This document shows, piece after piece, positions 12,217-24,897 of a stretch of 64,000 bases of DNA. The position numbers were made by a program, and so were the translations under genes. Each line of letters opens with the position of its first letter. Position 1 is the first letter of the stretch. Under the pieces are notes generated by a model that saw only the letters and a program-made list of their open reading frames with translations, had not been told where the DNA came from and did not search any database. Where the stretch lies: the sequence record OP953026.1; one strand, 5' to 3'.

Positions 12217-20980
<8,764 letters not shown>

Positions 20981-21038
20981 ATACTTGGAATAGTTATTTA
21001 TTGTAACCATTCTTAAACCAATGTAATAGGTAATTAAC

Positions 21039-21344
21039 ATGTCTCTACTTAAAAAGATCGGTCTAGCTTTAATTGGATCAGAAGGACGTAAGGAAGTTTT
21101 TGAACAAGAATTAACTAAACTATCAAATTCTAATGCAGTTATTGATCAAATGGTGATTAATTTACTGGGTAGTAAGAAGAAGTTAGATGACTTCCTAATT
21201 AAAGCTGAAGAAATTGATAATAAGAAACTAGGCTTCATTAAAAATCGAGCCGAACTTATTAAACTAGTCAAATCTAAATATTCACAAGACCCTCGGGTTG
21301 CCGATGTAGTAGTGTCACTTTACATTGGTGGTTTCATTTATTGA
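21039..21344 (+). CDS. hypothetical protein
   Basis: 101 aa ORF with an AGGT RBS. Confidence 0.7.
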   Translation: MSLLKKIGLALIGSEGRKEVFEQELTKLSNSNAVIDQMVINLLGSKKKLDDFLIKAEEIDNKKLGFIKNRAELIKLVKSKYSQDPRVADVVVSLYIGGFIY

Positions 21345-21351
21345 GGTAAGT

Positions 21352-22044
21352 ATGTCTAAACCTAATCTTGAGTGGTTAGCTTCCTTAGAAAGTAAAGAAG
21401 CTAAGAGTACAGTAGATTCTTCCGATATGGATAATGATCAAAAGGAAGGTAGCGATAAGTCTCAACAAGATGAAGCTACTGAACCTGAGAAGAAAATTAC
21501 TGCAACTGATGTACAAATTGCAATTGAAGAATATGCGCGTATCCGTGCATTAACCACTACTAAAGATCTTCCAACTGACCCTGAACCAGGTGATACTTAT
21601 CATGTAAATGGGGTAGATTGGATTTATCAAGAAGATGGTGGATGGGTAACTATGCAAGGTATTTATGGCCATGAACATTTTGATGAAAATGGTCTAAATA
21701 TTGAAGCAAGTGGTATTGATCAGAAATCAGGTGCAACTAAACGTTATGTGGTAACTGGTTATAATGCTCAGACTAACCCAGCTGCTATGCCTGGTGATAA
21801 TCTGACTGAATGTGTTATCCTAATGCAGAATGGACTTGTTCCAGAAGTTGGTGTAAATGGCCTAACTGCTGACTGTCTACTTAAAATCGTTAAAGATTTA
21901 TTTGAAGGTTATCAAGCAGGCCCATTTGCATGTGAAGAGAATCAGGTAGTGATTAATTCAATGGACCGTGCTCTTAGTGCAATTCATCAACGCCTCGTAA
22001 GACGTAAAGAACAAGGTACTGAAGGTACCTATAGTGGTAATTGA
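21352..22044 (+). CDS. probable virion protein (gp184-like) with C-terminal Acb2/Tad1-family cyclic-nucleotide sponge domain
   Basis: GAGGT RBS before ATG 21352. The C-terminal ~105 aa (NGLTADCLLKIVKDLFEGYQAGPFACEENQ...HQRLVRRKEQGTEGT) match the recalled Acb2/Tad1 signature. Confidence 0.8.
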   Translation: MSKPNLEWLASLESKEAKSTVDSSDMDNDQKEGSDKSQQDEATEPEKKITATDVQIAIEEYARIRALTTTKDLPTDPEPGDTYHVNGVDWIYQEDGGWVTMQGIYGHEHFDENGLNIEASGIDQKSGATKRYVVTGYNAQTNPAAMPGDNLTECVILMQNGLVPEVGVNGLTADCLLKIVKDLFEGYQAGPFACEENQVVINSMDRALSAIHQRLVRRKEQGTEGTYSGN

Positions 22045-22045
22045 C

Positions 22046-22112
22046 ATAAATGCCTCCCTTCGGGGAGGCTTTATTTCGTATTAAAAAAAATTTGAGATTT
22101 ATATTACTAGTG
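22046..22112 (+). promoter_or_regulatory. terminator plus early promoter cassette
   Basis: GCCTCCC-TTCG-GGGAGGC (22052-22069) with TTTATTT, then TTTGAGATTTATATTAC (TATATTAC 22100-22107), the phiKZ early promoter motif. Confidence 0.8.
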
Positions 22113-22152
22113 TGTAATTAGGAAACCATCTATCTAGTAAAGAGGAATCACA

Positions 22153-22707
22153 ATGAGCGTTGTAATTTTCACTGCCAGACCTATTGGTTATAAAGTTCCT
22201 GGCGCTAATTCCACTGTAAATAAGTTTGCACTAAATACAGCTAATGCACCTAGTGTATATAGTTCTTCACCAGGATCACCAATTACTGCTCAGGAGAGTA
22301 GTTGTATCTATACACTCACTTCAAATCATGAGTTAATCGCTGGGGACACCGATAAAGATAACTCCCTAATGAGTTTCAAACTAGTGCTTGCGTATAATAA
22401 CGATACAGCTAATTATCTAATTAGTACGCAGGTTATTGATAGTATCGATAAACTAAAAGGAGTGGAAATTATTAGTGAACTCAGTTTCAGTGTAATTGAT
22501 ACTGGTGCACATATGATCCGTAGAGTGAATTCGATCGGTGTATGTGAGGCTGTCGCCGCTCGATGGTCTCCAGTTGCAATTGAACACGTGGCTAAAGCAA
22601 CCGAGCGTGAGCACCCTGGTACTCCCATCGGTGATGTTCGTGAGATGATCGACTCTGGTGAAGACCTGGGTGACGTATGTACTTCATATATCAAATCGAG
22701 TAACTAG
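22153..22707 (+). CDS. hypothetical early protein
   Basis: 184 aa, GAGGA RBS, first gene after an early promoter. Confidence 0.75.
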   Translation: MSVVIFTARPIGYKVPGANSTVNKFALNTANAPSVYSSSPGSPITAQESSCIYTLTSNHELIAGDTDKDNSLMSFKLVLAYNNDTANYLISTQVIDSIDKLKGVEIISELSFSVIDTGAHMIRRVNSIGVCEAVAARWSPVAIEHVAKATEREHPGTPIGDVREMIDSGEDLGDVCTSYIKSSN

Positions 22708-22708
22708 C

Positions 22709-22951
22709 ATGGTAGATAAAGACAAAACAATGGTAGATTTGATTAAGTCAGCGCAAGAACTGACTTCACATCTTGGACCACTGAATAAAGTATTAACTAC
22801 CATTAATCTAATTGGTATGCCAGATGCTTTAAAAGAAGTAGTTAAACTCCCCGATGTAAAATGTGTTGTATATAAACGACCATTAACTGATAATCTAATT
22901 AAGGTTGTCTTTAATGATGGTAGTTGCTTTGTGATAAAAGATGTAAATTAA
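22709..22951 (+). CDS. hypothetical protein
   Basis: ORF track 22658..22951; ATG 22709 follows the previous stop. Confidence 0.65.
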   Translation: MVDKDKTMVDLIKSAQELTSHLGPLNKVLTTINLIGMPDALKEVVKLPDVKCVVYKRPLTDNLIKVVFNDGSCFVIKDVN

Positions 22952-22981
22952 ACCACCACCGTAAATAGAGAGAGTACTAAA

Positions 22982-23386
22982 ATGTCCATCGAAACCACCA
23001 AGAAGTTTATCGAAACCCACAACCTAAATGAAAAAGTAAGCATGTCTGATGCCGGGGTATTTGAGATCCCTGACGGTCTATTTGAAGAAGTTGTTCTTCA
23101 ACCAGCAGGCGTTACTGCCGAGCAGTATGCGCAGGTACATGAAGGTGCAGGTCAACTAGCAGCGGCTGTAAGTTATGTATTTGCTGAAAAAGCCGCACCG
23201 TACATGAAAGAAAATGAAAGCATTGCTGAGCTTGGTTATTCTTATAATGCAGGCGGTGCAACTGTTTCTGGTATCATTGATCGCAGTGGTGCTCTTGTAA
23301 CAGTTGTAGATACCAAATATAAGAGTAGCGCTATGACTGACGTTGTTGAAAGTGTAGCCAGCTTCTTTGAAGATGTCAATAGCTAA
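22982..23386 (+). CDS. hypothetical acidic protein
   Basis: 134 aa with a GAGAG RBS; followed by a hairpin at about 23417-23438. Confidence 0.75.
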   Translation: MSIETTKKFIETHNLNEKVSMSDAGVFEIPDGLFEEVVLQPAGVTAEQYAQVHEGAGQLAAAVSYVFAEKAAPYMKENESIAELGYSYNAGGATVSGIIDRSGALVTVVDTKYKSSAMTDVVESVASFFEDVNS

Positions 23387-23416
23387 TATATACTAGCTAT
23401 TTCAATATAATAAGAT

Positions 23417-23449
23417 CAGTGGGTGCATTGCCCACTGGTCATTTTTTAT
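23417..23449 (+). terminator. intrinsic terminator
   Basis: CAGTGGG-TGCATTG-CCCACTG followed by a T tract. Confidence 0.7.
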
Positions 23450-23506
23450 ATTAAAAAAGTTTAATGGCTAAATAGTACATTTTAATAATTTAAGGAACTG
23501 AGTATT

Positions 23507-23838: not shown

Positions 23839-24897
23839 ATGAATGGTTTATTTGTATGTATCGAAGGAACTGAAGGTGTTGGTAAAACAACTGTTACAAA
23901 GATGGTTGTTGAGGAACTACGTAAGCGCAATTACGATGTAGTAGCAATGCGTGAACCAGGTGGTACAGCTACATCGGAAAAGATTCGACAAATGTTAATT
24001 TGGCCAGAATTTAAAGATGAAGTTCGTCCGCCAGAATTCGATGTATTGATGCATAGTGCAGGTAGGATGCTTAATGTAGAAAACATTATTCGACCTGCTT
24101 TAAAAGATGATAAAATCGTTATCACTGAACGTTTCATTGCATCTACTTATGCTCTTAATGTAGTACCTTTTGAAGAAACTAATCCATACCTATCAAAACT
24201 ATTTATGGATATTCTTCAAGGAACACTACATTCTATTCCAGAACCGGCTACTTTCTTTTTAACTGCTCCTGAAGAAGTTCGTAAAAAACGAATTGAAATG
24301 CGCGACCGAGGTCTTGACTATTATGAGTCTAAGGGTTCCAGTTACTTTAATAAAGTAGATGAAGGTTATGGACGCTTAATTAATCAACCTAGTTCAATTG
24401 TTGTAGATACCAATCGCGATCTAGACATCATTGTTAATGAGATTGTTGAATCAATTATTTTCCTGCGTGATAAACAGAAAAATAAACAATCATCATTTGA
24501 TGAACAACTAGCTAAAACTACAACTAGTGATCAGTTTGATGATAGTGTAAGTTCTGAAATACCATGGAATGATGAACAGCAAGAAGATACTGTCGCAACA
24601 ACCGATGACACTATTAATTTTGATCTAGATGCTGAAATCAGTAAGTATCTTGATGAAAATATTATCCCTCAGTTATTCGAAGGTGATGATCGTTTCCTTG
24701 CATCTGGTAAGGTTGTGGCACAGAAGTACTGCCAACGAGTTTACGATCAGCTACCTGATAGTGAAAAGCACAAGATGTTCTTAGGTTCAAATAAAGAACG
24801 TCTAAATCAACAAATTCATAGTTTACTTTACTATGGACATCAATTAGATGCATTCATTGCAGAAAATGATCTAATTGGTAAAACACTCTGGAAATAA
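23839..24897 (+). CDS. tmk: thymidylate kinase with long acidic C-terminal extension
   Basis: P-loop IEGTEGVGKTT, REPGGT, ITERF and LID-region motifs. Confidence 0.92.
   Translation: MNGLFVCIEGTEGVGKTTVTKMVVEELRKRNYDVVAMREPGGTATSEKIRQMLIWPEFKDEVRPPEFDVLMHSAGRMLNVENIIRPALKDDKIVITERFIASTYALNVVPFEETNPYLSKLFMDILQGTLHSIPEPATFFLTAPEEVRKKRIEMRDRGLDYYESKGSSYFNKVDEGYGRLINQPSSIVVDTNRDLDIIVNEIVESIIFLRDKQKNKQSSFDEQLAKTTTSDQFDDSVSSEIPWNDEQQEDTVATTDDTINFDLDAEISKYLDENIIPQLFEGDDRFLASGKVVAQKYCQRVYDQLPDSEKHKMFLGSNKERLNQQIHSLLYYGHQLDAFIAENDLIGKTLWK

Follow-up and report, generated by a model that had tools for sequence, protein, structure and literature searches.

gp184 of a phiKZ-type Pseudomonas jumbo phage carries a Tad1 domain and is very probably a pro-protein for delivery of an immune-signal sponge within the phage particle

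Several phages package anti-defence proteins in the head and thereby have them at hand when infection begins. IPI* of phage T4 and DarA/DarB of phage P1 are anti-restriction proteins with a capsid-targeting leader, IPI* being trimmed by the prohead protease, and all of them are ejected with the DNA and act before phage gene expression. The logic is that of gp184, the subject of this report, with which these proteins have no relation in sequence or fold. Their targets also differ, as IPI* and DarA/DarB counter DNA-attacking restriction nucleases and gp184 is directed at diffusible signalling nucleotides. A closer parallel is found in phiKZ itself, where gp93 and other processed, injected head or inner-body proteins share with gp184 a capsid-fixed N-terminus and an injected C-terminus freed by the head protease gp175. 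The N-termini of gp93 and gp184/Tad1 are described as wedged in the capsid, with the C-termini freed by the protease and injected, and gp93 is non-essential by TnSeq, as is gp184. What sets gp184 apart from gp93 and the other injected proteins is its payload, a small-molecule sponge.

The sponge itself belongs to a family known from structures of CbTad1 (PDB 7UAV, 7UAW, 8SMD, 8KBE-8KBH) and CmTad1 (8KBB-8KBD). The solved Tad1 proteins are free-standing and 122-138 residues long; gp184, by contrast, is made as a precursor of 230 residues, 108 of which form a capsid-targeting half. Tad1 genes in bacterial genomes lie nearly all within prophages, whereas the gene for gp184 stands in one unit with virion genes, and the phage that carries it is a lytic jumbo phage. 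Acb2 and Tad1 alike are sponges built as hexamers, and each hexamer takes up two cyclic trinucleotides (Li et al. preprint).

That gp184 is a capsid-packaged, injected Tad1 sponge is already known from published work. Injection was detected by western blot of the FLAG-tagged protein in infected cells with translation blocked (PMC10449902), and the protein is listed as "Thoeris anti-defense protein 1 (Tad1, gp184)", non-essential by TnSeq and tolerant of many insertions. In the capsid, gp184 is an inner minor protein of the vertex-binding complex that is cut by gp175 at verified cleavage sites (PMC11297242). Passages in reviews state that phiKZ injects Tad1 against Thoeris and CBASS, and gcADPR binding and the block of Thoeris by phiKZ Tad1 are stated in such a passage with citation of Li et al. 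2024; phiKZ goes unmentioned in the 2023 preprint of Li et al. and in a 2025 preprint on sponge diversity. Of known anti-defence genes, AntiDefenseFinder detects none but Tad1 in phiKZ. The value of the present analysis therefore lies in confirmation: starting from the bare sequence, a first-pass annotation arrived at what had been published, and the computation described here reproduces it independently.

The gp184 gene and its surroundings

We analysed a 64-kb stretch of DNA (the window) that sequence comparison identifies as part of a phiKZ-type Pseudomonas jumbo phage. Over bases 20500-23500 it matches phage pPA-N1803-4At.2 at 100% identity and equal coordinates, and phiKZ 197617-200617 at 99.9% identity. 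The open reading frame of interest (Table 1) has the position, strand and length that the first-pass annotation had given, and the letters quoted there recur in the product, namely the C-terminus, the ASLE/S stretch at residues 10-14 and LPTDPEPGDTYHVNGVDWIY..GGW at residues ~70-96. A phmmer comparison with PDB sequences identified the product as chain I, "gp184", of the phiKZ capsid structure 8Y6V, with 230/230 residues identical. Together with the capsid assignment in PMC11297242, this bears out the naming of gp184 as a capsid component in the first-pass annotation. The phiKZ record in GenBank labels PHIKZ184 a "structural protein", and the closest GenBank records listed carry either that label or "hypothetical protein". 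Neither a second Tad1-like ORF nor a paralogue of the beta wedge described below was found within the 64-kb window.

Table 1. Features of the gp184 locus, with two related fusion genes from other contigs (positions refer to the window unless a contig is named; residue numbers are those of gp184)
Feature	Position	Strand	Description	Basis
Terminator-like hairpin	18938..18965	+	12-pair stem then T run; just 5' of gp182, at the start of the unit	
gp182 (PHIKZ182), baseplate spacer	18986..20980	+	664 aa	ORF; phrog_3181 (virion structural protein)
gp183, function unknown	21039..21344	+	101 aa	ORF; phrog_27341 (unknown function); no Pfam match
Shine-Dalgarno-like GAGG	21343..21346	+	5 bases 5' of gp184 ATG	direct sequence reading
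gp184, Tad1 precursor	21352..22044	+	230 aa + stop; ATG 21352, TGA 22042-22044	ORF
N-terminal leader	21352..21390	+	residues 1-13; ends S-L-E13 (head-protease-type site)	motif conservation
Acidic linker	21391..21558	+	residues 14-69; 14 D/E vs 8 K/R; predicted disordered; variable among relatives	
Small beta module (capsid wedge)	21559..21675	+	residues 70-108; ends G-H-E108	model + 8Y6V
Tad1 sponge domain	21676..22041	+	residues 109-230; four-stranded antiparallel sheet + two-helix hairpin	homology, profile, model
Helix hairpin	21910..22005	+	pocket residues Y187, N197, R214, R218, plus E195, N202	HMMER alignment
E195	21934-21936		CbTad1 R90 (cA3 site, hexamer interface); R in only 9/94 relatives	HMMER alignment
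N202	21955-21957		CbTad1 T97 (cA3 site, hexamer interface); column variable	HMMER alignment
Terminator-like hairpin	22052..22069	+	7-pair stem, 6 G-C pairs, TTTATTT tail; 8 bases past gp184 stop	
P0159, capsid-fragment/Tad1 fusion	L005:8001-9455		484 aa; 252-kb JGI contig	
P0103, capsid-fragment/Tad1 fusion	L008:1067-2107			

The gene is the last of a co-oriented gp182-gp183-gp184 unit that is bracketed by terminator-like hairpins, with the giant tail lysin gp181 upstream. The product of gp182 forms the baseplate spacer ring (PMC13250141). The description of gp184 as ending a tail operon thus holds for its end position, and the operon is more exactly this three-gene unit with the baseplate spacer. 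The same order is seen on distant jumbo-phage contigs, where a giant SLT protein is followed by a protein of 660 aa, then by one or two small genes, a Tad1 fusion and, later, a thymidylate kinase.

Scanning for sigma-70 promoters returned fewer sites than in shuffled sequences, as expected of a phage with its own polymerases. The octamer TATATTAC, which we take to be phiKZ early-promoter-like, occurs at window positions 22100-22107, between the gp184 terminator and gp185; across the window this octamer is not enriched (10 found vs 7.7 expected), and 9 of the 10 copies lie on the + strand. Two further observations concern the downstream region. At the locus of one distant relative, the Tad1 fusion is followed ~1.3 kb downstream by an ORF of 373 aa (L002:7902-9023) that weakly matches PhiKZ_MCP, and no counterpart was seen among the ORFs read from gp184 to the thymidylate kinase gene in the window. 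The thymidylate kinase itself, gp188 (window 23839-24897), has 352 aa with an acidic C-terminal part from about residue 200; a typical thymidylate kinase is much shorter.

The C-terminal Tad1 domain and its ligand pocket

The assignment of the C-terminal half was approached through single-sequence, profile and structural comparison. In a phmmer search of all PDB sequences, residues 117-226 of gp184 matched five distinct Tad1 sequences with E values of 2e-6 to 4e-6, the chains being those of CbTad1 in 7UAV and 8KBE-8KBH and of CmTad1 in 8KBB. HMMER with residues 109-230 against 1.84 billion representative proteins retrieved 2133 relatives at E<=1e-3, 257 of them at E<=1e-10. A profile built from 94 relatives then matched the Tad1 chains across their whole length (E 1e-29 to 4e-26) at 24-27% identity.

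The same 94-sequence alignment afforded a confident AlphaFold2 model of the domain (pLDDT 95.4, pTM 0.84) with strands at 2-4, 7-14, 21-27 and 45-50 and helices at 65-81 and 87-112 in domain numbering. When this model was compared with the PDB by Foldseek, the top 20 matches were all CbTad1 or CmTad1 (TM 0.6-0.76, E 1e-7 to 4e-6), and the match next in rank had an E value of 0.09. The fold is thus common to gp184 and to the solved CbTad1 and CmTad1 structures, at TM 0.70-0.76. An earlier full-length model from 20 sequences was poor (pLDDT 55.8), with Tad1 matches at TM ~0.43 and an rmsd of ~16, and for comparison of the Tad1 fold it was superseded by the domain model. The likeness between gp184 and Tad1 is well outside chance, and residues 109-230 form a genuine domain of the Thoeris anti-defense 1 (Tad1) family.

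Family models in common use are largely silent on this domain. Local Pfam and NCBIfam scans of gp184 gave no match, even at E<=10 or E<=1. For the C-terminal part, too, Pfam and NCBIfam returned nothing useful. PHROGs yielded only families of "unknown function". The Pfam model PF24729 Acb2_Tad1_hairpin (cut-off 27 bits) matches 3 of 40 gp184 relatives, one of them at 19.1 bits and hence below the cut-off. Precomputed tables record it as "weak" for close relatives, with gp184 itself unmatched even at E<=10. Given the GenBank labels and the empty Pfam and NCBIfam scans, pipelines built on such family models may under-report gp184.

The first-pass annotation had spoken of an Acb2/Tad1-family sponge and had named profile and Foldseek comparison among the means of checking it. 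Both returned significant Tad1 matches (best profile E 1e-29; best Foldseek E 1e-7, TM 0.76), and the Tad1 half of the name stands on sequence, profile, fold and pocket residues; the Acb2 half fell away, no Acb2 chain being matched by sequence, by profile or among the 50 best Foldseek matches listed. That the domain might instead be an Acb2-type anti-CBASS sponge is scarcely credible. Acb2 has in common with the gp184 Tad1 domain the two-helix hairpin, and Pfam joins the Acb2 and Tad1 hairpins in PF24729, the model weakly recorded for gp184 relatives. Against this, neither the single sequence nor the family profile recovers an Acb2 chain at E<=10, and Acb2 is absent from the 50 best Foldseek matches listed. 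Furthermore, the domain carries the N-terminal beta-sheet typical of Tad1, and the residues with which CbTad1 binds cyclic trinucleotides are changed in gp184. An Acb2 identity for gp184 was accordingly rejected on the sequence and profile searches and the 50 best Foldseek matches listed. Vs.4 of phage T4 belongs to Acb2.

To relate the Tad1 domain of gp184 to ligands, residues were mapped by HMMER alignment of gp184 with CbTad1, with the roles of CbTad1 residues taken from the preprint of Li et al. and column shares counted over the 94 relatives. The pocket that binds gcADPR and cyclic dinucleotides is common to the two proteins. CbTad1 F82 is replaced by gp184 Y187, in a column that is aromatic in 92/94 relatives, whereas N92 corresponds to N197 (N in 94/94), R109 to R214 (R in 94/94) and R113 to R218 (R in 91/94). 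The C-terminal G-x-E-G-T lid motif of CbTad1 and CmTad1 is also present in gp184. The alignment upheld the view that QAGPF, the E-N pair and two arginines (R214 and R218) are retained, but not the proposed replacement of Trp by His, as the CbTad1 tryptophan aligns with A210 and not with H212.

In contrast to the pocket, the cA3-site residues of CbTad1, which lie where the dimers of its D3 hexamer (a trimer of dimers) meet, are not kept in gp184, where R90 and T97 give way to E195 and N202. The R90/T97 pair is a trait of CbTad1 and CmTad1 that is not universal in the relatives, so the change limits the predicted ligand range and not membership in Tad1. From the conserved pocket we infer that gp184 keeps gcADPR binding, and it probably keeps cyclic-dinucleotide binding, whereas cyclic-trinucleotide binding in the manner of CbTad1 is doubtful. 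The substitutions thus predict a narrower ligand range than that of CbTad1, and the Tad1 of the phiKZ clade may be a narrowed sponge whose cyclic-trinucleotide site has been lost. Such a loss would fit what is known of phiKZ and CBASS, as its tolerance of cA3/NucC CBASS reportedly needs the recombinase Nlp1 and an nlp1 mutant is rescued by Acb2 in trans. The two altered residues, E195 and N202, stand where CbTad1 uses the same positions for both hexamer interface and cA3 binding; the released gp184 domain would presumably assemble into hexamers.

The N-terminal half, release from the capsid and delivery

The first 108 residues of gp184 comprise a leader, an acidic linker and a small beta module (Table 1). 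Residues 1-69 have a pLDDT below 50 in the full-length model, and the strands of the beta module (82-85, 88-92 and 98-100) are the only confident ones beyond the Tad1 domain. In chain I of 8Y6V only 34 gp184 residues are ordered, and these match the full-length model at 100% identity with a TM of 0.82. In the phiKZ capsid, gp184 consists mainly of beta-strands and is inserted with gp86 on one side and the centre of hexameric capsomer 1 on the other (PMC11297242). This beta wedge is confined to the phiKZ-like subclade; in the A1 alignment, the window protein and P0001-P0004 are the ones that show it.

Protease-type sites flank the linker and wedge. gp184 has seven [SAG]-x-E sites, of which the two with E13 and E108 as their last residue are conserved. 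At the place of E13 the motif is found in 18/18 aligned relatives, the glutamate being nearly invariant, and the second site, G-H-E108, directly precedes the Tad1 domain. A site of this type lies within 12 residues of the Tad1 boundary in 15/20 relatives as compared with 28% of shuffled extensions, a comparison that is supportive and is not to be read as a probability, since the rows are related. The specificity of gp175 is said to be S/A/G-X-E, a description that reportedly goes back to Thomas et al. 2012. Judged by these conserved motifs, gp175 most likely cuts gp184 after S-L-E13 and after G-H-E108, and a cut after E108 would leave a 122-residue product, the size of a free-standing Tad1. 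The acidic N-terminus, S-L-E site and virion-type module that the first-pass annotation had picked out are present as a charge excess, a conserved motif and a beta module matching 8Y6V. The larger proposal, of a sponge that is joined to a virion module, packaged beforehand and delivered on injection, agrees with the Tad1 placement made here and with the published capsid and injection data (PMC11297242, PMC10449902).

The first-pass annotation had offered, as the other possibility, a sponge fold re-used structurally. A Tad1 domain serving as a capsid component with vestigial signal binding would accord with the place of gp184 in the vertex-binding complex (PMC11297242) and with its GenBank label of "structural protein", yet we consider this highly improbable. 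The 34 residues ordered in the capsid map match the beta module and not the 122-residue Tad1 domain, and the pocket residues N197, R214 and R218 are invariant or nearly so in the relatives. Furthermore, the gene ranks as non-essential, many insertions in it being tolerated, and the vertex complex of phage Goslar does without a gp184 homologue.

We therefore regard gp184, with high confidence, as a pro-protein that delivers an immune-signal sponge within the phage particle. The protein would be synthesised late, together with virion and baseplate genes of the gp182-gp184 unit, and its N-terminal half would bring it into the prohead. There, the beta module (~residues 70-108) would wedge between gp86 and the major-capsid hexamer beneath each vertex, and gp175 cleavage would release the Tad1 domain of ~122 residues within the head. 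Stored in the head, the freed domain would exit the capsid together with the DNA when the next cell is infected and, in the cytoplasm, would capture the first gcADPR, and probably cyclic dinucleotides, in the Y187/N197/R214/R218 pocket. With the signal captured ahead of phage transcription, the effector would stay off before phage gene expression. A phage that forms a nucleus keeps nucleases away from its DNA, but it cannot protect the cell from the small-molecule alarm signals that trigger abortive infection, and a ready-made, capsid-borne sponge would answer such signalling at time zero.

The dose delivered in this way would be small. Five vertex complexes per vertex (PMC11297242) imply ~55-60 gp184 copies per virion or, by our own arithmetic, binding sites at roughly 0.1 micromolar for a cell of 1 fL, and what is injected can therefore buffer no more than the first signal molecules. 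Late de novo synthesis may carry much of the sponge load. A stronger version of this argument holds that the sponge acts mainly through late new synthesis and that packaged and injected copies contribute little, as a by-product of the capsid-protein carrier. The count of only ~55-60 copies per particle, with one ligand per sponge site, speaks for it, as does the unit shared with a baseplate gene, from which late-made copies would far outnumber packaged ones. We nevertheless think it unlikely, because injection of gp184 has been demonstrated directly (PMC10449902), and because a protease-type site before the Tad1 domain in 15 of 20 relatives is only sensible if release in the head matters. The recurrence in the family of unrelated N-terminal carriers, capsid-protein fragments among them, likewise argues against it.

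Tad1 fusions among the relatives of gp184

The architecture of the family was surveyed in the 166 closest relatives (P0001-P0166) out of the 2133 at E<=1e-3. Free-standing Tad1 accounts for 84/166. In another 66/166 the Tad1 domain forms the C-terminal end of the protein and is preceded by an extension of 50 residues or more, a count possibly inflated by gene-start errors in metagenome calls. By blastp these 66 extensions sort into 39 unrelated groups; 58 of the 66 are net acidic.

Three of the extended proteins bear directly on carriage in the capsid. P0159, P0072 and P0103 begin with part of a major capsid protein of the phiKZ type, covering positions ~135-368 of the PF25620 profile with a best E of 3.9e-24 and sharing ~29% identity with the major head proteins of Ralstonia and Burkholderia jumbo phages. 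A whole capsid-fragment/Tad1 fusion was found in no cultured phage of the collection searched, and a literature search for capsid-protein::Tad1 fusions gave nothing specific. Two elements of the analysis may be new, namely the change of the cA3-site pair R90/T97 to E195/N202 and the unrelated acidic extensions, three of which are capsid-protein fragments. Taken together, a phiKZ-clade Tad1 narrowed by loss of its cyclic-trinucleotide site and a capsid-carried Tad1 that is widespread and of several origins form a picture that we put forward only tentatively. Within it, the capsid-fragment fusions may represent another route by which a sponge is anchored in the capsid, and their sequences suggest that such anchoring arose more than once.
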